A DNA stretch of 64,000 bases from the IMG/VR virus record IMGVR_UViG_3300024350_000252, positions 124,001 to 188,000 of that record; one strand, written 5' to 3'. A model generated the notes under the pieces. The model was not told the DNA's origin and did no database searches. It saw only the letters and a list, made by a program, of their open reading frames with translations. This document shows, in pieces, positions 11,276 to 21,587 of this stretch. Each line of letters begins with the position of its first letter. Position 1 is the stretch's first letter. Position numbers and translations under genes: made by a program.

Positions 11276-11710
11276 GTGCTTTGGACATATCAAAATCAAA
11301 TCGTAGAAGAAATACCCGAAGGCTATATTGGCTTTGTTTATCTCATCACGAATCTTACTACCGGCCAGAAGTACATAGGCAAGAAACTAGCACAATTTAA
11401 ACGTACTAAACCTCCTCTCAAAGGCAAAAAACTCAAGCGCAGAAGCACAGTAGAAAGCGATTGGCGCGATTACTGGGGTTCTAGCGACAGGTTAAACGCA
11501 GACGTCCAAGCATTAGGTCCGGAAAACTTCACCAGAGAAATACTTTATTACTGTAAAAGCAAGGCAGAAATGGGCTATTTAGAGGCAAGAGAGCAGTTTG
11601 AACGCCGAGTTTTAGAAACAGATGACTATTATAATGGCATTATAAACGTCAGAGTAGGCGGCTCAAACATACTTAGGCAGCGTCTTTTAGAGCACGAAAA
11701 GGCAAAATAA
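11276..11710 (+). CDS. Stand-alone GIY-YIG family endonuclease (Seg-like)
   Basis: 144 aa; GFVYLITNLTTGQKYIGKK (GIY-YIG motif), YWGSS, FTREIL, YLEAREQF, YYN; GTG start abuts the upstream stop codon. Confidence 0.85.
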   Translation: MLWTYQNQIVEEIPEGYIGFVYLITNLTTGQKYIGKKLAQFKRTKPPLKGKKLKRRSTVESDWRDYWGSSDRLNADVQALGPENFTREILYYCKSKAEMGYLEAREQFERRVLETDDYYNGIINVRVGGSNILRQRLLEHEKAK

Positions 11711-12213: not shown

Positions 12214-13467
12214 ATGAGAATCAATGATATCTTAATCGAATCACAGGTCAAAGAAGCACCACAAGGCATGCTCAAACGAGCTGGACTTGGTATAATGAGT
12301 AAATTTGGCAGTGATAAAGCTGCTGGTAAACTAGATACTGGTGCTATCGCTAATGCTCTAATGAGAGATTTTAACAGATTCCTTGGTGCTACTAAGCTAG
12401 AACCTGATGCTGATGCTGTACTACGTTTCCTACAAAGCAAAGGTTATCCATCTGATGGCGCTAAGATGGTTTTAGACAAAGAAGCTAACTCTGCTACTGG
12501 TAACAGAGCTCCGAAAGGTCCTATGGGCGGTGGCATCATGGGCAAGATGAAAGGCGCTGCTGGCTCTTTAGGCAACAGGCTAAAAGCTAATCCTGAACAG
12601 CCACAAGACAGGATTGAGCCAACAGGAGACGACGATGCGACAGCTACAGCTCAACCTAGCGCATCACAAGCACAACCAACAGCACAACCAACAGCAACAG
12701 CACAACCAACAGCAGCAGCACAACCAACAACAAAACCTAGCGCATCACAAACACAAACGCCAGCGCAACAGAACACTAATAAAATTGATAAAAAAGCACG
12801 TAAAGCCGCAGGTAAAGCTGCTATGGCTACACAGCAGGCTGCAGCTGACGCTCAGAACAAACCTGGATGGGCACGGACCGCTGATGATAAGATAAGAATA
12901 CAGGCCGCAAAAGGTGTTAATGCTAATGCTGCCGGATCTTTTAAGTCAGGAGCAGCTAAAATCCGTTCTAAAGGTCTAAACATGAGCATGTACACTGAAG
13001 AAGCTCTTCCACAAGCTACACTAGACAAAGCATTCATGCAAGCTGCTCATGATGCTGCCAAGATGGGCTATGGACTAGATCCAAACACAGGTAATATCGT
13101 TGACCAAGGTGGTGCCGCACAAGGTCCTATGGGTGGAGGCAATCAAGGTGCTGCCCAGGGCGGTGGCAGTGCTTGGGACAGTTTTAAACAAGGTGTCGCT
13201 GGAGGTCTAACTGGACAGCAAGCAGGCGATGCTTCTGGTGGCGGACAAAGCGGTATACAAGGTTCGCTAAACGTCAATGCGTTAACACAGCTATTGCCTA
13301 ATGTCAATCCAGCTCAATTAAAAATGGCTGTGAGCACGGTCAAGAGCGGTGGACAGTTAAGTAGGACACATCAAGCAGTGCTAGCATCTGCTATGATCGA
13401 TCTGATGAAAGCTGATCCTGCTACTACACAAAAAGCATTCACGCTGTTAAAACGAATACAGGCTTAA
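12214..13467 (+). CDS. Hypothetical low-complexity late protein (possible internal head protein)
   Basis: 417 aa, A/Q/G-rich with AQPT repeats; preceded by a late promoter; N-terminus MRINDILIE. Confidence 0.75.
   Translation: MRINDILIESQVKEAPQGMLKRAGLGIMSKFGSDKAAGKLDTGAIANALMRDFNRFLGATKLEPDADAVLRFLQSKGYPSDGAKMVLDKEANSATGNRAPKGPMGGGIMGKMKGAAGSLGNRLKANPEQPQDRIEPTGDDDATATAQPSASQAQPTAQPTATAQPTAAAQPTTKPSASQTQTPAQQNTNKIDKKARKAAGKAAMATQQAAADAQNKPGWARTADDKIRIQAAKGVNANAAGSFKSGAAKIRSKGLNMSMYTEEALPQATLDKAFMQAAHDAAKMGYGLDPNTGNIVDQGGAAQGPMGGGNQGAAQGGGSAWDSFKQGVAGGLTGQQAGDASGGGQSGIQGSLNVNALTQLLPNVNPAQLKMAVSTVKSGGQLSRTHQAVLASAMIDLMKADPATTQKAFTLLKRIQA
12653..12750 (+). repeat. Coding tandem repeat (AQPT/ASQ units)
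   Basis: GCACAACCAACA units repeated, flanked by a 17-nt direct repeat AACCTAGCGCATCACAA at 12653-69 and 12734-50. Confidence 0.85.
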
Positions 13468-13700
13468 AAGAAAGGCAGTCCAGAAGTCTTAGCGATTTCT
13501 ATATTTTCTTTTACTAACTTCTGTATTATTTCTCTTTCCTCATAGCTGAGGTTCATGGCTTCGGTATAAGACATTCCTCCACGCAGGTACCATATACATC
13601 TAAAAGCTTCAAGTTTAACGTCTTTGGCCTGTTCGTCAAGGGCTTTCGTCTCAGCCAGGATTTCATCAATCGTTAACGACGAAAGCCTGAACCGAAAAAA
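13464..13700 (-). CDS. gp51-like extension reading frame, probably reached by -1 frameshift from the upstream gp26-like ORF
   Basis: Open -1 frame FFRFRLSSLTIDEILAETKALDEQAKDVKLEAFRCIWYLRGGMSYTEAMNLSYEEREIIQKLVKENIEIAKTSGLPFF*. There is no ATG/GTG/TTG before the internal MSY. The stop codon overlaps the convergent stop of the 417-aa gene (TTAA 13464-67). Confidence 0.75.
   Translation of the reverse strand, partial: FFRFRLSSLTIDEILAETKALDEQAKDVKLEAFRCIWYLRGGMSYTEAMNLSYEEREIIQKLVKENIEIAKTSGLPFF
13641..13700 (-). promoter_or_regulatory. Programmed -1 ribosomal frameshift signal (slippery heptamer plus 3' stem-loop)
   Basis: T TTT TTC heptamer (13700-13694) in the correct phase (GAT TTT TTC), 6-nt spacer GGTTCA, then a perfect 10-bp stem GGCTTTCGTC (13687-78) / GACGAAAGCC (13650-41) with a 27-nt loop. 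Confidence 0.75.
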
Positions 13701-14578
13701 TCCGAGCTGTCCATGTTAAGATCTACGGACCATTCGTGCTCGCATTTGGAACATTTGGCTTTAAATGAGCTCATAGTTCCGCTTTCTTTGCTTTTGTTTA
13801 CAGCATCAGTGATAGATTGGAATATAGATTTATCAGCGTTGGTTAAAAATTCTCTGATAAACTCTGGATTATCTGTGCTACCTTCTGTACTTTCGATCTT
13901 ACTAATACAATTAACAGCAGAATCGATAGTCAAATCAGTGAGCTTGACAAAACTTTCTTGGAACATCCTAACTTTTTCCTGTTCCTCGATACGATCATCA
14001 TTGATGATAGAAAATATACGCTGGTGTTCAAATGCTTTTAAGCTGACTTTGGTCAATTGATTGTAGTCCATAGGACGTAGATGAACCAACATACTATCGC
14101 CTATCTCGACAGTTTTATTGAAATTTACTTTGTTAAGACTATCTAACACATTCCTTAGATCAACAGCTAGATCATTTACAGTTTCGCATTTAGGACAACC
14201 TGCGGTGACATCCATTTCTTCGCCGTAGGTAGCGATACGGATAGCTACTAAGATAGCATCAACATCTAAGCTAGGCACTGCCCAACCATCTTTGATGTTA
14301 GGTACACAGCTACGTATAACTTCTACAGTAGCAGCACCGTTCATCAGCGCATCTGGTGTTTTAAACAACAGTTCATCTCGAGCTGTCATAGCAAACACAG
14401 GATACTCGTTGTTGATAGTTTTTTCTAAAGCACCTTCTGGGTAAAACTCTCCTTTGCTAGGCAGCGAAATCCAAATTTTGGGCTGTCGAAAAAATGCTGC
14501 TAGAGGATTTTTATCTGTTTTCACAGCAGGTGCTGGCTGCGCAGATGTTGGGTTTAAGTTGTTGATAAATTCTGCCAT
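13673..14578 (-). CDS. Baseplate hub assembly / tail assembly chaperone, T4 gp26-like
   Basis: 301 aa; LPSKGEFY, MTARDELLFKTPDALMNG, DVDAILVAIRIATYGE, and two CxxC pairs (CPKC, CSKC), typical of gp26-like proteins. Confidence 0.8.
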   Translation of the reverse strand: MAEFINNLNPTSAQPAPAVKTDKNPLAAFFRQPKIWISLPSKGEFYPEGALEKTINNEYPVFAMTARDELLFKTPDALMNGAATVEVIRSCVPNIKDGWAVPSLDVDAILVAIRIATYGEEMDVTAGCPKCETVNDLAVDLRNVLDSLNKVNFNKTVEIGDSMLVHLRPMDYNQLTKVSLKAFEHQRIFSIINDDRIEEQEKVRMFQESFVKLTDLTIDSAVNCISKIESTEGSTDNPEFIREFLTNADKSIFQSITDAVNKSKESGTMSSFKAKCSKCEHEWSVDLNMDSSDFFGSGFRR

Positions 14579-14588
14579 TTTCTATACC

Positions 14589-14618
14589 TATAAATATAAT
14601 AGTGTTCAGATATTTATA
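14589..14618. promoter_or_regulatory. Face-to-face pair of perfect T4 late promoters
   Basis: TATAAATA on + (14589-96) and TATAAATA on - (14611-18), 14 nt apart, between the divergent chaperone and tape-measure-like genes. Confidence 0.7.
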
Positions 14619-14656
14619 TGCGTAGATTTCTGGCATTTTCATAATTGGTAGGAAAG

Positions 14657-17167
14657 ATGGCCATACAAAAAGTACAAATCCTGGGTGGTGAACTAGACGG
14701 TGTCGTTATTGAAAACGCTGCCAGCGAAGCTACCTTACAGGAAATTATCAAATCGGTCAATTCTATCAACAAATCCATGGGCGGCAGTTCTGGTGGCGGT
14801 GGAGGCGGTGGTGCTGCTAACAGAGCAGACAATACTGATAAAGCCAAATCTGAATGGGGTAAAAAACTAGCTAAAGGCATAGGTGCTTTAGCAGGAACTA
14901 CTACTAATCTCGCTGGCATGATAGCCAGCGGCAGCGACAAGATGAGTGAATATTCAGCGGCGCTGAATAATGGACTGATCAAGAATTTGCCTTTCGTTGG
15001 AGAAACACTTGGTGCTCTAGGAGATGTGTTTGTCCAAGGTGTTAAAGTACTAGAAGGTTGGAACGATAATCTTAAAAAATCATCGTCATATGGTGCTAAT
15101 TTTAACAACAGCATCATGGAAATGAGATCAGTAGCAGCCGGTCTTTACCTAGACATGGACGGACTTAGTCAATTAATAGCTAAACGCAGCAAAGATTTTG
15201 CTATGCTAGGACGAGGAGTCACTGAAGGTGCGAGAGAAGTTTCAGATTTTTCTCGAGAAGTTTATAAAGGTTCAGGCGGTGTTGGTGAAAGGATGCTTAA
15301 CTTGGGCAGAACTGTTGACCAACTAGCAGACAACATGACCTCTTGGTATACCATGGTCAACCGAGGTGTGAGAGACAATAGGATACAAGGACCAGCAGCA
15401 GCCCAAGCCTTTGAAAGTTACATGAAAAACATCATGTTGATTTCTAGGATGACTGGAGAAAGCGTAGAGGATCTACAGGCAAAAGCTGAAAAAGAAAGTC
15501 AAAACGCAGCTTTCCAATTAAAATTAAACAGCTTGGCTCCTGAAGCTAGAAACCGTATCATGCAACAGATGACCTATTTCCAAAGCATGTATGGCGAAAC
15601 TGGAGCTGAACTGTTTAGAGCACTGTATCTAGGAGTAGCACCACAGACTGATGCTGCTCAATTGTTAATGACACTAAATCCTCAACTGGTAGCAGAAGCA
15701 AGACGAGGACAAGCTCTAGCTAAATCAGGACTAGATGAAGAAGAATACGGCAAGCGTATGAGAAGAAGCAGAGCCGAAAGTCTATTCCAATCTGCTAGAC
15801 TAGGTAAAGCCAATGACGCACTTTATTCTATGATAGCCAGTGGTGCGCCTGGCATGAAAGAAATAGGGCAGTCCACGGAAGCATTAAACAGGACTACTCT
15901 AAAAATTGCGAACATGAAATCTGTAGATGAGATAGAAGGATTCTTGTTACAGCTTGAAAATCAAAATAAAGAAGGTGATCCATTAACTAGGATATTAAAT
16001 GCGTTTGGACTCAGCGCACACGACTTCCAGACAAAAGTGATAGATGTGCTATTGCCGATATTAGAAGGTATAGGTAGCGAATTGATCAAAGCTGGTGTAG
16101 CTGACAAGATGAAAGAAATGGGCACGACACTAGGCCGATGGGTAGGTGAGTATCTACCCGATGCTGTAGGATTTTTTGAAGAACTTACAGATGCTAATGG
16201 GTGGAAAAGATGGAATGTCAAGATCGAATCATGGTTTAGCACTATAACTGCTTATCTAAGATATGCTATAAGGAAAGCCTTTGAAAGTCCTGAAGCAGAT
16301 AATCAACTAAAACAAGAATTAGAAGAAGTACTCAAACAGAAAGAACGTGATCTAGCAGCTATTCCTAAACCAGCAACACCGATAGCTGACGCAGCAAGAC
16401 GTGGTTATGCTGCGGCATTAGAAACACAAAGAAGAGAAGCACGTGAAGCAGCCGCTGGCGGCGGTGCTCCTATTCCCGGAGGACCTGGACCTGCTCCACA
16501 AGGTTATACTTATGGTCCTCAGGAAAACATGACCGACGGCAGCAACGGTCGACTACCAGACAGCGCATTAGCTAGCATAGGACAAGGACGTCATAGATTA
16601 CAACCAAGCGCGGCTAGAGCTTTTATAGCCATGGCTGATGCTGCTCGTCGAGAAGGTATCAATCTAAATGTAACTGATTCATATAGAACATTCGCAGAAC
16701 AAGTAGACGTTAAAAATAGAAAACCCACACTGGCTGCTCGACCAGGATTTTCTAAACATGGTTGGGGATTAGCAACAGATATCAATGTACGTGATCCTAA
16801 AGTTTTTGATTGGCTAAAAAGGAATGCTACTAGATTTGGATGGGAAGGGCCTTTACAACAACCATACGAACCATGGCATTGGCAATTTAAAGGAATGAGT
16901 ACTGGTACCTTAGGTACTATGGGAAAATTGTTTGGAGAGTTTGGAGCAGGAACTCCTGTCGAACTACACGGACGAGAAGCTGTTATCACACCTAGCCAGA
17001 TGGAAGATATAATCTCAACAGGCGGCAAGGTTAATGTAGGAGAAATGATCAATGATCTAAATTCTAAGATGAACACTCTTATCAGCATCTATAAAGAAAA
17101 AATAGACATTAATAAATCTCACCTAGAAACTTTAAGACATCAATCAGGTAATATGATCTATGCCTAA
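14657..17167 (+). CDS. Tape-measure-like protein 1 with C-terminal M15 (VanY-like) peptidase
   Basis: Long helical A/E/K/Q-rich body. SYRTFAEQ...SKHGWGLATD...EPWHWQF carries the M15 zinc motifs SxHx6D and ExxH. ATG at 14657 is preferred to the ORF-track start at 14645. Confidence 0.75.
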   Translation: MAIQKVQILGGELDGVVIENAASEATLQEIIKSVNSINKSMGGSSGGGGGGGAANRADNTDKAKSEWGKKLAKGIGALAGTTTNLAGMIASGSDKMSEYSAALNNGLIKNLPFVGETLGALGDVFVQGVKVLEGWNDNLKKSSSYGANFNNSIMEMRSVAAGLYLDMDGLSQLIAKRSKDFAMLGRGVTEGAREVSDFSREVYKGSGGVGERMLNLGRTVDQLADNMTSWYTMVNRGVRDNRIQGPAAAQAFESYMKNIMLISRMTGESVEDLQAKAEKESQNAAFQLKLNSLAPEARNRIMQQMTYFQSMYGETGAELFRALYLGVAPQTDAAQLLMTLNPQLVAEARRGQALAKSGLDEEEYGKRMRRSRAESLFQSARLGKANDALYSMIASGAPGMKEIGQSTEALNRTTLKIANMKSVDEIEGFLLQLENQNKEGDPLTRILNAFGLSAHDFQTKVIDVLLPILEGIGSELIKAGVADKMKEMGTTLGRWVGEYLPDAVGFFEELTDANGWKRWNVKIESWFSTITAYLRYAIRKAFESPEADNQLKQELEEVLKQKERDLAAIPKPATPIADAARRGYAAALETQRREAREAAAGGGAPIPGGPGPAPQGYTYGPQENMTDGSNGRLPDSALASIGQGRHRLQPSAARAFIAMADAARREGINLNVTDSYRTFAEQVDVKNRKPTLAARPGFSKHGWGLATDINVRDPKVFDWLKRNATRFGWEGPLQQPYEPWHWQFKGMSTGTLGTMGKLFGEFGAGTPVELHGREAVITPSQMEDIISTGGKVNVGEMINDLNSKMNTLISIYKEKIDINKSHLETLRHQSGNMIYA

Positions 17168-19841
17168 TAGCAATGTAGAAATAATCATATCAGGAACCAG
17201 AGGCGTTATAGACAACGCAGTTTCTGAAGCCAGCTTACAAGAACTTCTTAAAGCTATACAGAAACTTGACAAAAATTCAGGTGGAGAAACTAACAGAGGA
17301 AGCACTGCCGGTGCTGCCGCAGCTTACGAAAAAAGCTCAAGCGAAATAGCGGATTCTATATCAAAATTAGACAGCAAAGCTGCTAATGCTATCAAAAAAA
17401 GCGTAGACATGTTCAAAGGTGCTATGGACAGAAACACTAATACTTTTAGTGATTTTGCCAGAGTAATGAACGATACTTTTATCAAGAAAGTTCCGTTAGT
17501 TGGCGGGCTAGTTGGAGGTTTCCTTGATATATTTGTGATGACCACAGCGGTAGTAGAAGGTTGGAACTCGACTCTTAAAAAGACTTCTGCTGTTGGTGCT
17601 AACTTTGGTAATAGTGCGTTGGCTCTACGTCATGCTGCTGCTAATGCCAGGATGGATTTAGATGAATTTGCTAATCTGGTAGTTTCTAATGCTCAAGGGT
17701 TATCTCTATTATCTGGAGATGTTAGATCAGGCGCTGAACGCCTATCTATGAGTTTTGAAAATCTATATAATGGAACTAGTGGTGCTAGAGAAAGACTGTT
17801 ACAGCTGGGAATAAATCAAGAAGAATCTGGAGATATGTTTGCTAAATGGTTGATAATGACCAATCAGGGCAATCAAGAAAATACACAGAGGACAGCTAAT
17901 CTTAACAAAGCGTTTGTTGGTTATATAGAAAACCTAGATGCGCTAGCATCTATGTCAGGAGTTGACAGAAAATCTCTAGCTCAAAAAGTAGCAGCAGTTG
18001 AACAAGATGTGATCTATCAAAGATCATTGGCAAAATTAGATCCACAAGAACAAGGCAAGATGAGAACTAGACTGACTAGGATGATAGCTCTGTTTGGAGA
18101 CCAAGGTGCCGACTTACACAAAGCACAGGCGGCAAACACTACACCAGTCACGCAAGGTGCTTTCCAAATATTGGGATTAGCACAGGGTATGAGACAGGTT
18201 CTAGAAGAAGATCTAAGACAGGCTAGAGATCATAATGTAACCGAAGAAGAATACAACAAAGGTGAATCTGAAAGAACTTTTAAATTGTATCGAGTAGGAT
18301 TACAGCATTTTAAAAACAACAGGTCGTTCTTTATGGCCACACTGGCCACAGCTGAAGGTCAACGACAATTAGGCCCTGGCATGACTAAAATGTTACAAGA
18401 TCTTCTTAGTTTTGGTGATATCAGCAAGATGACTGATGCTGAACTTAGGAAAGCTATAGAAGACAGTAGAAATAAAAAAAACAAATACGAAGGTATAACA
18501 AAAATCCTAGATACATTTAGTTTAGCATTCAAAGATGCTAGGAAAAACTTTTTTGACACATTGATACCTGTATTAAAAGGTATGGGAGAAGCATTAAAAC
18601 CTCTACCTGCTTTATTAAAACAAGCAGGTGAAGATCTTTCTAAATGGATCAAAGATGTTGCTATGCCCGCTATGACTGCTGTATATGATAATATGTTTAG
18701 CGAAGAAGGCAGGAACAAGATATTTGTACATCTCGAAGGCTGGGCAAGATTGATGTATGTAGAAATAAAAAGGCTTATATCTGATTTTCTTGTAGCCCAA
18801 GGAGCTCCAGACAGTGTCGTAAGTTTATTTTTAGGAAAATATGACGATAATTTACGAAGAGCTCAAATGAAAAATGCGTTAGGAAGAGCAGCAGCCGGAG
18901 GCGGCATGACTTCTTCTGGAGGAGCTACAACAATACAAAGAGATGCTGGTTCTGTGATAGCACCAGACGCATCAACTGAATCAGAAACTATGACAATAGC
19001 TAACACTATTGGTGTTAATACTCAACAATTTGTCGCTCCGTCTGCTGGTGGCAAGATGACCGGTACATATCTTACACAAGATCAAACTAGAGAACTGGTG
19101 GTGCCCGGCGCTTCTGAGTTTGGATCTGCTACGGTTCCATTAGAAAATTCCACAAGAAGATGGGAATTCGCTAAAGGTCATGAACCATTTGGTGCTCCAT
19201 TTAATGGTTTGATCACTGTAGCTGACATCGAAAAACAAATTGTAGAATTATGGGATGAAAAAGCTAATTCCGGAGAAGGTATAACTCTAAGGATTTCGGG
19301 ATTTGATAAAGAAAAAAGTAAAGCTATTTTTGATGCTATACGAGGAAAACCAGTAACTGCTGGACAGACTATAGGTATAGGACCAAACAACCTGTTAACA
19401 GGGTCTTGGTTTAGTTATCTAACACCTAATACTGTACAAGTACAAGGATTTAGAGGAAAACCAGAAAATGAAAGGACGTTTGATCCTAGAATATTTTTTC
19501 CAGGTGAAGGACCAAAAGCAAATAATCCAGCAGCATCGACTCGAGCAGCTCCGGGAGCACCGCCCGCTTCTCGTGCGTATGGATCTCTAGGTGCTACAGG
19601 CAAGCTGTTTGAAGAATTTGGAGCAGGTACAAAAGCGATTCTACATGGCAGAGAAGCTGTAGTTACACCTCAACAGCTGGAAGGAATAGTTAATAGCAAA
19701 GATCAAATCGAGATGGTACAATTCATTTCTAGTTTAAATACTAATATGGCCAATCTTCTAGAAATAGCCAGACAAGAACTATATATAGATCAAAACAAAG
19801 CACATGTTCAAAAAGGAGTTAAAATGCCTTACATGGCATAA
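17160..19841 (+). CDS. Tape-measure-like protein 2 (paralogue of protein 1) with a possible degenerate M23-like domain
   Basis: Shares N-terminal VI(E/D)NA.SEA(T/S)LQE and C-terminal GKLF.EFGAGT...LHGREAV.TP.Q with the upstream gene. PVTAGQTIGIG...DPRIFF recalls the M23 fold, but no His ligands are evident. Confidence 0.65.
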   Translation: MPNSNVEIIISGTRGVIDNAVSEASLQELLKAIQKLDKNSGGETNRGSTAGAAAAYEKSSSEIADSISKLDSKAANAIKKSVDMFKGAMDRNTNTFSDFARVMNDTFIKKVPLVGGLVGGFLDIFVMTTAVVEGWNSTLKKTSAVGANFGNSALALRHAAANARMDLDEFANLVVSNAQGLSLLSGDVRSGAERLSMSFENLYNGTSGARERLLQLGINQEESGDMFAKWLIMTNQGNQENTQRTANLNKAFVGYIENLDALASMSGVDRKSLAQKVAAVEQDVIYQRSLAKLDPQEQGKMRTRLTRMIALFGDQGADLHKAQAANTTPVTQGAFQILGLAQGMRQVLEEDLRQARDHNVTEEEYNKGESERTFKLYRVGLQHFKNNRSFFMATLATAEGQRQLGPGMTKMLQDLLSFGDISKMTDAELRKAIEDSRNKKNKYEGITKILDTFSLAFKDARKNFFDTLIPVLKGMGEALKPLPALLKQAGEDLSKWIKDVAMPAMTAVYDNMFSEEGRNKIFVHLEGWARLMYVEIKRLISDFLVAQGAPDSVVSLFLGKYDDNLRRAQMKNALGRAAAGGGMTSSGGATTIQRDAGSVIAPDASTESETMTIANTIGVNTQQFVAPSAGGKMTGTYLTQDQTRELVVPGASEFGSATVPLENSTRRWEFAKGHEPFGAPFNGLITVADIEKQIVELWDEKANSGEGITLRISGFDKEKSKAIFDAIRGKPVTAGQTIGIGPNNLLTGSWFSYLTPNTVQVQGFRGKPENERTFDPRIFFPGEGPKANNPAASTRAAPGAPPASRAYGSLGATGKLFEEFGAGTKAILHGREAVVTPQQLEGIVNSKDQIEMVQFISSLNTNMANLLEIARQELYIDQNKAHVQKGVKMPYMA

Positions 19842-19853
19842 TTGGAGAATACA

Positions 19854-21587
19854 GTGAGCTGGAAAAAATATTTTACACCCGTTACAGTTGGAGCGCAAAC
19901 AGGGACATTCAGCCCACTGGGCAATGGTTCTCGTCCGGGTCCAGCCAAAGTAAATTATAGTTCTTACCTGCCCGACGTCTACGCAGGTACACCTAATCGT
20001 ACAGAACGTTATATGCAATATGACACTATGGACATGGATTCAGAAGTCAACGCAGCGTTAGATATTCTAGCAGAGTTTTGTACGCAGGACAACAGAGACA
20101 ACTATACAGGATTCCAATTCCAGTTTAAAGGCACACCTACAGCCACTGAAGTCAAGATATTAAAAGACAGTTTACAAAAATGGCACAAACAGAATCAGTT
20201 CGATACTAGACTGTTTAGGATCATTAGAAATATATTCAAATACGGTGATGCGTTCTTTGTACGTGATCCAGAAACTAAAAAATGGTTTTATGTAGATCCA
20301 GGTAAAGTTACCAAGATCATCGTCAACGAAAGCGAAGGCAAAAAACCAGAACAGTATGTTGTTAGAGATTTTAATCTCAACTTTAAGCATCTCGTAGCTA
20401 CAAACATAAGCCCTAACACTAGCAACACACCCGCAGGCACAGCCAACTATATCAGCGGTGGCGCACTAGGAAGAGGCATGGTAGGAGCAGCACCTACACA
20501 GACTGGCAGCAGATTCAGCGTAAATCAAAACGAAATCGCTATAGATGCTGAACATGTTATACACATCAGCTTATCAGAAGGACTAGATAACAACTATCCA
20601 TTTGGCAACAGCCTGTTAGAATCTGTATTCAAAGTCTACAAGCAAAAAGAATTGCTTGAAGATGCTATCGTTATCTATCGTATACAACGTGCTCCGGAAC
20701 GTCGTGTGTTTTATGTAGACGTTGGTAACATGCCCGCACACATGGCCATGAGCTTTGTTGAGCGTGTGAAAAATGAAATCAATCAACGTCGTATACCTAG
20801 CCAAGCAGGCGGCGGACAGAACATCATAGATGCTAGCTATAATCCGTTGAGCATCTCTGAAGACTACTTCTTTCCCCAGACCGCAGAAGGTCGAGGATCA
20901 AAAGTAGATGTTCTACCAGGTGGTACTAATCTAGGCGAAATCGACGATCTACGCTACTTTACTAATAAACTATTCCGTGCTTTGCGCATACCTAGCAGCT
21001 ACTTGCCAACCATGCCTGACGACAGTCAAGCACAGCATGTGGATGGCAAAGTAGGCACAGCCTACATTCAAGAACTGCGTTTTAACAAATATTGCGAACG
21101 TCTACAGAGCCTGATGATCGGAGAGTTTGATCTAGAATACAAGAGATGGTTGATAGATCAAGGCATCAATATTGACAATTCTCTGTTTGAACTTAAATTT
21201 AATCCTCCACAAAACTTCGCAGCTTATCGTCAGAGCGAACTGGACAACGCTAGAGTACAGACGTTTGCTGCTTTACAAGAAGTGCCTTACCTCAGCAAGC
21301 GTTTCTCTATGAAACGTTTCTTAGGATTGAGCCAAGAAGAGATCGTAGAAAACGAACGTATGTGGAAAGAAGAAAATGGTTCTACTGTAGCAGCAGCTCT
21401 AAACGCAGCAGCAGAATTGCGTGGAGTAGGAGTTACACCGGACGGTATTTCAGGCGATCTAGGCGATCAAACAGCAGAAGCACCAGAAGATATGGCAGCG
21501 GCTGCTGAACCAGGAACCTCAGAAGCACCAGAAACAGCAGCAGCTACAGCAGCACCGCCAGCACCACCGACTCAGCAGACTATCTAA
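19854..21587 (+). CDS. Portal vertex protein, T4 gp20-like
   Basis: SWKKYF, YDTMDMDSEVNAALD, KQKELLEDAIVIYRIQRAPERRVFYVDVGNMP, EDYFFP, GTNLGEIDDLRYF, ELRFNKYCERLQ. Probable GTG start at 19854 after GGAG. Confidence 0.97.
   Translation: MSWKKYFTPVTVGAQTGTFSPLGNGSRPGPAKVNYSSYLPDVYAGTPNRTERYMQYDTMDMDSEVNAALDILAEFCTQDNRDNYTGFQFQFKGTPTATEVKILKDSLQKWHKQNQFDTRLFRIIRNIFKYGDAFFVRDPETKKWFYVDPGKVTKIIVNESEGKKPEQYVVRDFNLNFKHLVATNISPNTSNTPAGTANYISGGALGRGMVGAAPTQTGSRFSVNQNEIAIDAEHVIHISLSEGLDNNYPFGNSLLESVFKVYKQKELLEDAIVIYRIQRAPERRVFYVDVGNMPAHMAMSFVERVKNEINQRRIPSQAGGGQNIIDASYNPLSISEDYFFPQTAEGRGSKVDVLPGGTNLGEIDDLRYFTNKLFRALRIPSSYLPTMPDDSQAQHVDGKVGTAYIQELRFNKYCERLQSLMIGEFDLEYKRWLIDQGINIDNSLFELKFNPPQNFAAYRQSELDNARVQTFAALQEVPYLSKRFSMKRFLGLSQEEIVENERMWKEENGSTVAAALNAAAELRGVGVTPDGISGDLGDQTAEAPEDMAAAAEPGTSEAPETAAATAAPPAPPTQQTI

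Follow-up and report, generated by a model that had tools for sequence, protein, structure and literature searches.

A conserved, predicted -1 ribosomal frameshift site in the gp26-family gene of jumbo phages

A gp26-family tail-hub assembly gene of a giant phage carries a deeply conserved ribosomal slip site, which is predicted to yield both a short protein and a longer one with an additional 76-residue C-terminal domain. Such recoding is known from lambda-type tail chaperones but appears unreported for this gene family: none of the papers returned and read in literature searches linking a frameshift to gp26, the baseplate hub or RaK2-like phages describes this event, and a search on the bare heptamer string was uninformative. 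It is also missed in the 11 deposited genome records examined, in which the extension is missing, truncated or called a separate hypothetical protein. The window analyzed is a stretch of 64,000 nucleotides of the IMG/VR record IMGVR_UViG_3300024350_000252 (positions 124,001 to 188,000). An initial annotation made from the sequence alone had proposed that a programmed -1 frameshift fuses a gp26-like ORF to a start-less, gp51-like frame, by analogy with the lambda G/GT chaperone switch. The observation itself was confirmed, and comparison with relatives made it much stronger. The interpretation was only partly supported, as described below.

Results

The gp26-family gene and its recoding signal

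All coordinates were verified against the sequence. The features are as follows.
13673..14578, minus strand: zero-frame ORF, 301 aa (stop included), gp26-family baseplate-hub assembly protein, the predicted short form
13694..13700, minus strand: slippery heptamer U UUU UUC, in phase (GAU UUU UUC = D293 F294 F295)
13688..13693, minus strand: 6-nt spacer GGUUCA between the heptamer and the stem
13641..13687, minus strand: predicted stimulatory stem-loop, with arms 13687-13678 and 13650-13641 (10 bp, perfect) and a 27-nt loop containing an inner small hairpin
13655..13690, minus strand: alternative, family-wide helix, 13690-13681 with 13664-13655 (alignment columns 11-20 / 37-46)
13464..13694, minus strand: -1 frame extension, 76 codons (13694-13467) plus stop (13466-13464)
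13464..14578, minus strand: whole recoded gene, with a predicted trans-frame product of 371 aa
14645..19841, plus strand: two divergent paralogous tape-measure-like virion protein genes, followed by the portal gene at 19842-21587

The zero-frame ORF ends with ...DSSDFFGSGFRR and its stop codon, and GAT TTT TTC places T TTT TTC at 13700-13694 in X XXY YYZ phase. The spacer (GGTTCA in the DNA) is followed by the stem arms GGCTTTCGTC (13687-13678) and GACGAAAGCC (13650-13641). The -1 frame runs from CGG at 13694 for 76 sense codons to TAA at 13466-13464 and reads RFRLSSLT...WYLRGGMSYTEAMNLSYEEREIIQKLVKENIEIAKTSGLPFF. A -1-frame stop lies 5 codons upstream of the heptamer, and the first ATG/GTG/TTG in that frame is the MSY codon, 42 codons after the heptamer begins. 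The predicted fusion therefore consists of 295 zero-frame residues and 76 residues in the -1 frame, with the junction ...DSSDFF|RFRLSS...

The zero-frame product matched PF12322 (T4_baseplate, the T4 gp26 family) with an E value of 6e-17 and 62.5 bits against a gathering cut-off of 24.5, over residues 68-295, ending at the FF. It also matched phrog_150 (baseplate hub) with an E value of 6e-23. Its AlphaFold model had a pLDDT of 88.7 and gave 73 BFVD matches at E<=1e-3, including Aeromonas phage 25 gp26 and many entries named baseplate hub, with top TM scores of 0.81-0.82.

The possibility that the feature is a decaying gene fusion, a pseudogene remnant or an assembly error, with a stem that is a chance match, cannot be excluded from the window alone but is refuted by the comparative data. 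Identical DNA occurs in four other IMG/VR contigs from other metagenomes, and also in DNA and RNA run assemblies with no indel at the T run. The 71-nt segment folds at -22.4 kcal/mol (z = -3.08), and 0 of 200 shuffles fold as well. In addition, conservation extends over 26% to 76% identity, with hundreds of homologues.

Conservation of the heptamer and the -1 frame

Conservation of the heptamer and covariation of the stem had been named beforehand as tests of the frameshift, and both were examined across relatives. NNT TTT TTC is present in 91/91 metagenomic (IMG/VR) loci and in 11/11 cultured jumbo phages, namely Atu_ph07, Phosso, PA5oct, Turkey5, CBB, XaC1, RaK2, 121Q, phAPEC6, Vibrio 2.275.O and SCTP-2. 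The residue before FF varies (D, N, S, T, H, R, Y), yet the third base of its codon is always T. All 56 clusters below 70% identity conform, although Phe elsewhere in these genes is encoded by TTT and TTC at 535 : 159 (77% TTT) and NNT is 66% of NNY. Part of the heptamer is nevertheless explained by protein conservation, since FF is also conserved in T4 gp26 (EFFELL), and the C of the heptamer is also constrained by the -1-frame Arg codon: the base after the heptamer is G in 89/91 loci, giving CGN = Arg. U_UU.U_UU.C is an efficient bacterial -1 frameshift motif (PMC4066793).

The -1 frame is open for 73-79 codons in all of these relatives and encodes a conserved domain (R..[RK][ILV]L...WYMRGG...GLPFF). 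In an alignment of 54 sequences, the mean column identity was 64%, W35 and R38 were invariant, and R1, the first post-slip residue, was at least 90% conserved. Variation has a period of 3 in the -1 frame from the first codon. The model of the extension had a pLDDT of 90.5 with helices at 9-36 and 51-71, a predicted helical hairpin. A search of 1.84 billion representatives returned 486 relatives of the extension.

These data bear on the alternative that the downstream frame is a separate gene, translated as a small protein by termination-reinitiation coupling at the gp26 stop or from an internal or non-canonical start, with the T run merely encoding the conserved Phe-Phe. GenBank annotators call separate small ORFs, and 7/56 clusters, including Atu_ph07, Phosso and Turkey5, have an ATG overlapping the zero-frame stop (ATGA or TAATG type; 121Q has one at a TAATG overlap). 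Independent coupled initiation could contribute in those clusters. In addition, T4 gp26 has the conserved FF but no extension. However, 40/56 clusters have no ATG/GTG/TTG before codon 9 of the extension, 27 lack one before codon 17, and the -1 frame is closed 0-29 codons upstream. The residues upstream of the internal starts are conserved and evolve as -1-frame codons, and the wobble positions of the heptamer are invariant against codon bias. Likewise, the distance from the heptamer to the zero-frame stop varies from 1 to 6 codons, whereas the -1 frame stays in register with the heptamer. Together with the natural fusions described below, these findings make two separate genes unlikely.

Downstream RNA structure

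The mean MFE of the 70 nt after the site was -16.6 kcal/mol, against -10.1 kcal/mol for windows in the gene body. A helix of 8 bp or more starts 3-7 nt after the site in 37/56 clusters, against about 5 bp in shuffles. In the remaining 19/56 clusters, no contiguous helix of 8 bp or more was detectable, and the 3' partner sits at different positions in different lineages. In the closest relatives, the pair of the window's 10-bp stem at alignment columns 22/52 changes from U-A to A-U (loci L007 and L030), and locus L029 has a G.U. The alternative helix at columns 11-20 / 37-46 forms 9 of 10 pairs in the window and competes with the 10-bp stem because both use the same 5' arm. Across 54 sequences, 78.5% of cells in this helix are paired, against 33-55% when the partner is slid, and there are 65 double-sided changes against 25.8 expected, a number reached by 0/500 shuffles. 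Covariation supports the downstream structure. By contrast, a helix at columns 13-23/52-62 was weak as a family-wide structure (58.8% paired, not above shuffles) and is used only by some lineages; the window's own stem is offset from it by one base.

The long form could also arise from transcriptional slippage, in which RNA polymerase would drop one U, or add two, in the U6 run and so join the frames in a minority of mRNAs. A homopolymeric T6 run does lie at the junction, and UUUUUUU runs are noted as prone to slippage (PMC4066793). However, the run is only 6 nt, whereas known bacterial transcriptional slippage sites use runs of about 8-9 or more, and the seventh base is always C, which limits the run length. 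The run is conserved in exact X XXY YYZ phase with a hairpin 3-6 nt downstream, which are requirements of ribosomal and not of transcriptional slippage. Metatranscriptome contigs span the junction with the genomic T6 and no indel, although contigs would hide rare variants; they show only co-transcription and an unchanged T6 run. We thus regard transcriptional slippage as very unlikely.

In-frame equivalents in a sister lineage

About 20 of the top 150 extension homologues are proteins of 319-351 aa that carry the extension in frame at the C-terminus, with the junction x-F-R-x-K-I/L, a single Phe and no slippery site. In 5/5 loci of this sister lineage (within the metagenomic loci L108-L113), the gene is immediately preceded by a short gp26-like gene of 276-300 aa, in the same synteny. 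So the short and long forms are made there by gene duplication instead of frameshifting. The heptamer is not conserved where the extension is not downstream: 3 of 5 short copies have no slippery heptamer, and the two that keep a T-run heptamer (L108, T TTT TTC; L110, T TTT TTA) have a -1 frame that closes at once. In the tree, three of the five short copies nest inside a clade of frameshift-type genes (100/97 support).

Genomic context and comparison with T4 gp51 and tail chaperones

The gene is divergent from two paralogous tape-measure-like genes, encoding 840 aa with a VanY/M15 peptidase domain and 893 aa (27% identity over 520 aa, 47% over the C-terminal 77 aa). The same layout (portal, virion protein of ~720-800 aa, then divergent gp26-like gene) occurs in CBB, XaC1, PA5oct, RaK2 and 121Q. 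BLASTP of the 840-aa neighbour against T4 gp29 revealed no significant similarity; its tape-measure identity rests on synteny, virion mass spectrometry, the RaK2 annotation note (similar to a tape-measure protein) and length scaling, as neighbour length scales with tail length at 0.170 nm per residue in both CBB and PA5oct.

The initial annotation was supported in its prediction of a programmed -1 frameshift that joins the gp26-like ORF to a start-less downstream frame, in its remark that the extension would be easy to mis-annotate, as it is mis-annotated or missing in the deposited relatives examined, and in placing the gene divergent from tape-measure-like genes. Its gp51-like label for the downstream frame was not supported. 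BLASTP of the extension against T4 gp51 gave no alignment at E<=100, and no Pfam or PHROG hit was obtained. In T4, gene 51 is divergent from gene 26, and gene 25 follows gene 26. T4 gp26 ends ...EFFELL with TTC TTT, which is non-slippery, and its -1 frame is closed. So the recoded gene does not merge T4's separate genes 26 and 51 but adds a domain that T4 gp26 does not have.

A G/GT-like chaperone role, also proposed initially, is plausible but remains an inference. Two features fit: two forms from one gene, on comparative evidence only, and absence from the virion proteomes of relatives. The homologues are absent from the CBB and phAPEC6 virion mass-spectrometry tables, although the neighbouring tape-measure-like protein is present, and the homologue is not flagged ESI-MS/MS in the PA5oct record, whereas its neighbours are. 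This is negative evidence from relatives only, and CBB nevertheless labels the homologue 'structural protein'. One defining feature is lacking, because the gene does not lie between the tube and tape-measure genes: the tube gene lies at about 207.3 kb in the coordinates of contig G000:C1, against 137.6 kb for this gene. No Pfam tail-chaperone hit was obtained, and neither a sequence search of solved structures with profiles of both pieces nor a Foldseek search of the PDB with both models found anything. A wide structural search (VIA-align) gave only noise-level matches; the best to a tail chaperone, at rank 2, was 3klu_A (YqbN; Z 6.5, 99/119 residues aligned), within the noise range stated for the method, and we keep it as a lead and not as evidence. 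A complex prediction of the extension with the tube protein (L114:201-839) and a tube-like protein (L114:913-2028) gave no answer and is used neither way.

Discussion

We consider it highly likely, from sequence comparison alone, that this is one recoded gene that makes two proteins. In this view, most ribosomes would terminate at 13673 and give the 301-aa short form, while a fraction, paused by a hairpin that begins 3-6 nt downstream, would slip back one base on U UUU UUC, with both tRNA-Phe re-pairing (UUU to UUU in the P site and UUC to UUU in the A site). These ribosomes would then read Arg and 75 further codons, giving the 371-aa long form with a C-terminal helical-hairpin domain. Comparison shows that the signal and the extension are conserved, that the extension lacks a start of its own in most lineages, and that it is a genuine C-terminal domain of gp26-like proteins. 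What we infer beyond this is the trans-frame protein itself, and that both forms are non-virion assembly factors for the central hub and tape-measure stage of tail assembly, needed together at a set ratio. The short form would supply the bulk gp26 function and the long form would carry an extra docking domain; this role, and any binding partner, are assigned by analogy with lambda G/GT. T4 gp26 and gp51 are cited as proposed chaperones or cofactors (PMC9024508), in line with an assembly-factor reading.

More tentatively, the gp26 family may be the long-missing tape-measure and hub chaperone of T4-type contractile tails. On this reading, a requirement for a bulk short form and a rare long form with a docking domain would be ancestral and would have been met in three ways: by -1 frameshifting in RaK2/PA5oct/Atu_ph07-type jumbo phages, by tandem paralogues in the sister lineage, and possibly by internal initiation (gp26/gp26') in T4. 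The G/GT principle would then extend to a protein family and gene position unrelated to the classical tail assembly chaperones.

The finding adds a conserved, predicted recoding event, not annotated in any of the 11 deposited genome records examined, to a large clade of jumbo phages, which has more than 588 IMG/VR relatives and includes many therapeutic-candidate phages of E. coli, Klebsiella, Pseudomonas, Erwinia and Salmonella; cultured E. coli and P. aeruginosa phages carry the same signal. It also provides a testable handle on the old question of what gp26 does in hub assembly, since the short/long pair and its replacement by two genes in a sister lineage argue that two forms of the protein are needed. 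Furthermore, it is a clear natural example of frameshifting and gene duplication serving as interchangeable ways to make a protein with and without a C-terminal domain.

Among known systems, lambda gpG/gpGT and the conserved tail-assembly-chaperone frameshift of long-tailed phages (Levin 1993; Xu, Hendrix and Duda 2004; reviewed in PMC5009743) share a -1 slip, predicted here, on an X XXY YYZ heptamer near the 3' end of a tail-morphogenesis gene, giving an abundant short form and a rarer C-terminally extended form, a location next to the tape-measure gene, products apparently not in the virion, here on negative evidence from relatives only, and a downstream frame that has no start of its own and is routinely mis-annotated. 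They differ in protein family (PF12322 gp26, about 280-300 aa with two CxxC pairs, against chaperones of about 100-140 aa) and in gene position, as the present gene is divergent from the tape-measure gene and about 70 kb from the tube gene; the extension here is only 76 aa.

T4 gp26 shares the family and fold and the position divergent from the hub and tape-measure operon, and T4 gene 26 also makes two products, listed as CDS 26 and 26'. However, T4 makes the shorter gp26' by internal in-frame initiation, an N-terminal truncation and not a frameshift extension, and T4 gp26 is 208 aa. The tandem short and long paralogues of the sister lineage share the synteny (portal, tape-measure-like gene, then divergent gp26-like gene) and the extension domain, including the W[YFH]MRG motif, but there the long form is a separate, fast-evolving gene and no recoding is needed. 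Finally, the dnaX tau/gamma and IS3-family -1 frameshift signals of bacteria have the same layout, an efficient bacterial heptamer plus a downstream stem-loop, and U_UU.U_UU.C is used by some IS elements (PMC4066793), whereas the biological context here is virion assembly rather than replication or transposition.

Organization of the gp26-like locus

We first examined the minus-strand ORF and the sequence surrounding its 3' end. The ORF encodes a 301-aa protein of the T4 gp26 family (PF12322, 62.5 bits against a cut-off of 24.5; phrog_150, 'baseplate hub'), and the profile match ends exactly at Phe294-Phe295. The features of the locus are as follows.

13673-14578, minus strand: gp26-like ORF, 301 aa
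13700-13694, minus strand: T TTT TTC in X XXY YYZ phase, within GAT TTT TTC, which encodes the Phe-Phe pair and the preceding Asp
13687-13678 and 13650-13641, minus strand: GGCTTTCGTC and GACGAAAGCC, perfectly paired arms of a stem beginning six bases after the heptamer
13466-13464, minus strand: TAA that ends the -1 frame after 76 codons

The 71-nt segment containing the stem folds at -22.4 kcal/mol (z -3.08), and none of 200 shuffled sequences folds as well. The zero frame stops six codons after the Phe-Phe pair, while the -1 frame is closed five codons before the heptamer and its first ATG/GTG/TTG comes 42 codons after the heptamer begins. The elements described in the initial annotation, namely the ORF, the in-phase heptamer, the 6-nt spacer, the stem and the start-less -1 frame, were therefore all found where they had been placed.

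The window is part of a 238-kb IMG/VR contig estimated to be 67% complete, so the phage is a jumbo phage. Four other IMG/VR contigs from other samples carry the identical junction, and river metagenome and metatranscriptome assemblies matched it without any indel at the T run, indicating that the junction is not an artefact. Metatranscriptome contigs from two runs end at 14581 and 14582, only 3-4 nt upstream of the gp26-like ATG (14578), and the interval 14583-14685 is uncovered. A T4-late-promoter-like TATTTATA lies at 14596-14589 on the minus strand, about 6 nt upstream of that end, which suggests a nearly leaderless late mRNA, although contig ends are weak evidence. On the other side of the locus, a plus-strand gene (12214-13467) encoding a 417-aa low-complexity protein with AQPT-rich repeats, for which we obtained no family assignment beyond a weak PHROG hit, converges on the extension ORF, and the two stop codons overlap in a TTAA. 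A GIY-YIG (SegE-type) homing-endonuclease-like gene (11276-11710, plus strand) recurs near the gp26-like locus in the window and in several distant relatives (loci L109, 5759-6247; L111, 2619-3143; and L113, 7419-7886). In L113 (1-709), the portal gene carries an intein (PF14890 Intein_splicing, with a faint HNH) inside Portal_T4.

Conservation of the probable slip site and the -1 frame

Relatives of the gene were found in the RaK2/121Q/CBB/GAP32, PA5oct, XaC1 and Atu_ph07/Phosso jumbo myoviruses (96 GenBank records, about 30% identity) and in more than 588 IMG/VR contigs. We examined 91 metagenomic loci and 11 cultured phages, and every one has NNT TTT TTC at the conserved x-F-F. Every complete locus also has a -1 frame of 73-79 codons, counted from the two Phe codons of the heptamer. 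The residue before the Phe-Phe pair varies (D, N, S, T, H, R, Y), but its wobble base is always T. All 56 clusters sharing less than 70% identity conform, whereas elsewhere in the same genes Phe is encoded by TTT and TTC in a ratio of 535 : 159 and NNT makes up 66% of NNY codons. The base after the heptamer is G in 89 of 91 loci, so the first -1 codon is Arg. U_UU.U_UU.C belongs to the H_HH.U_UU.Y class, which is among the most efficient -1 heptamers in E. coli, and is used by some IS elements (PMC4066793).

The 76-residue extension is better conserved than the gp26 body (mean column identity, 64% against 52%), and its variation has a period of 3 in the -1 frame from the very first codon. By contrast, the zero-frame tail varies from 1 to 6 codons. 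In 40 of 56 clusters, there is no canonical start before codon 9 of the extension. Only 7 clusters have an ATG overlapping the zero-frame stop, an arrangement that arises wherever a TGA stop follows a codon ending in A. Thus, the extension is coding from the slip site onward and mostly has no start of its own. In the deposited genomes, the region was left empty (PA5oct, RaK2), called as a truncated ORF from an internal ATG (CBB, XaC1, Atu_ph07) or called as a separate small gene (121Q, Phosso, Turkey5). Another probable mis-annotation was found in Yersinia phage fHe-Yen9-04 (LT960551.1 / LR596615.1), whose gp26-like homologue is annotated as 'Lead, cadmium, zinc and mercury transporting ATPase', probably because of two CxxC pairs. 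In the window these are C128/C131 and C276/C279, each at least 90% conserved in a 13-sequence alignment; they suggest a zinc-binding site that bridges the middle and the C-terminus of the gp26-like fold, just before the Phe-Phe slip site.

RNA structure downstream of the heptamer

Across the 56 clusters, the 70 nt after the heptamer fold at -16.6 kcal/mol on average, against -10.1 kcal/mol for windows in the gene body. A contiguous helix of 8 bp or more starts 3-7 nt after the site in 37 clusters, whereas shuffled sequences give about 5 bp. In an ungapped alignment of 54 sequences, the helix at columns 11-20/37-46 is paired in 78.5% of cells, against 33-55% when the partner is slid, and it shows 65 double-sided changes against 25.8 expected, a value reached by 0 of 500 shuffles. 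Other lineages pair the same 5' arm with a more distal 3' arm. The window does this, at columns 14-23/51-60, and in its closest relatives one pair of that stem switches from U-A to A-U. A second helix that we tested was not supported family-wide.

Two genes instead of the probable frameshift in a sister lineage

A profile search with the extension returned 486 homologues among 1.84 billion representative proteins. Most of them are short stand-alone ORF calls, but about 20 of the best 150 are 319-351-aa proteins that have the extension in frame at the C-terminus of a gp26-like body. Their junction reads x-F-R-x-K-I/L with a single Phe, for example TTC CGT, and has no slippery site. In all five loci fetched, the long gene is immediately preceded by a second, short gp26-like gene of 276-300 aa. 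Three of the five also show the upstream layout of portal and a tape-measure-like gene of about 765-783 aa (638 aa at the contig edge in the third), with the short gene divergent and the long gene after it. The heptamer is not conserved in the short copies: 3 of 5 lack any slippery heptamer, and where a T-run heptamer survives (T TTT TTC in locus L108 and T TTT TTA in locus L110), the -1 frame closes at once. In a maximum-likelihood tree, three of the short copies nest inside a clade of frameshift-type genes (support 100/97), while the long copies sit on long, unresolved branches. The simplest reading of this natural control is that both a short and a long form are required, and that duplication replaced recoding at least once.

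Predicted structures and relationship to T4 proteins

The gp26-like body gave a confident model (pLDDT 88.7, pTM 0.83), which matched gp26-type hub proteins of many myoviruses in BFVD, whereas sequence-profile and fold searches of the PDB found nothing. A wide structural scan gave only noise-level scores; its second hit was YqbN (3klu), with Z 6.5 over 99 of 119 residues. YqbN is an XkdN-type tail assembly chaperone of a PBSX-like element, and the hit is a lead rather than evidence. The extension was modeled as a helical hairpin (pLDDT 90.5) with no informative structural neighbour. The initial annotation regarded the downstream frame as gp51-like, but this is wrong: the extension is not related to T4 gp51, with no BLASTP alignment at E<=100. 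In T4, gene 51 is divergent from gene 26, gene 25 follows gene 26, and gp26 ends with a non-slippery TTC TTT.

Genomic context

The gp26-like gene is divergent from two virion-protein genes, which are followed by the portal, prohead protease and major capsid genes.

14645-17167, plus strand: tape-measure-like gene, 840 aa, with a VanY/M15 peptidase domain (residues 650-750)
17160-19841, plus strand: tape-measure-like gene, 893 aa, without this domain

The two are tandem paralogs (27% identity over the N-terminal 520 aa and 47% over the C-terminal 77 aa), whereas the cultured relatives have one. The single homologue in relatives is a virion protein by mass spectrometry (CBB_251, with 29 peptides, and phAPEC6 gp231c), and the RaK2 record notes its neighbour as similar to a tape-measure protein. 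The length of the neighbour scales with tail length: 123.0 nm and 722 aa in CBB and 136 nm and 798 aa in PA5oct both correspond to 0.170 nm per residue. The gp26-like protein itself is absent from the CBB and phAPEC6 virion tables and is not flagged in the PA5oct record. The tail tube gene (213 aa, phrog_4542, E 2e-50) lies elsewhere on the same contig (G000:C1), at L114 201-839, and is followed at 913-2028 by a larger tube-like paralog of 372 aa (together about 207.3-209.2 kb of G000:C1). The latter may be a tube initiator or cap, or a second tube protein.

Comparison with known tail assembly systems

Taken together, the interpretation offered in the initial annotation was partly supported: the frameshift is very likely real and a chaperone-pair function is plausible, though tentative, but the downstream frame cannot be equated with gp51. 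Sequence comparison established the conservation of the heptamer and the -1 frame and supports a downstream structure in most clusters, while the slippage event itself, the resulting fusion protein and any chaperone role are inferred. In the literature searched, we found no paper that links a frameshift to gp26, the baseplate hub or any RaK2-like, PA5oct-like or Atu_ph07-like phage, and none of the 11 GenBank records examined annotates a joined CDS. T4 gp26 and gp51 are cited as proposed chaperones or cofactors (PMC9024508). Lambda G/GT is the textbook case of a fixed short:long ratio made by a -1 frameshift, in which G binds the tape measure and T binds the tube (PMC5009743). The analogy to G/GT is therefore reasonable, although the gene position differs, the fold of the gp26-like protein is not demonstrably that of a tail chaperone, and a single complex prediction of the extension with the tube and tube-like proteins gave no answer. 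In this view, the gp26-like gene would represent the G/GT principle in a different protein family and at a different gene position.
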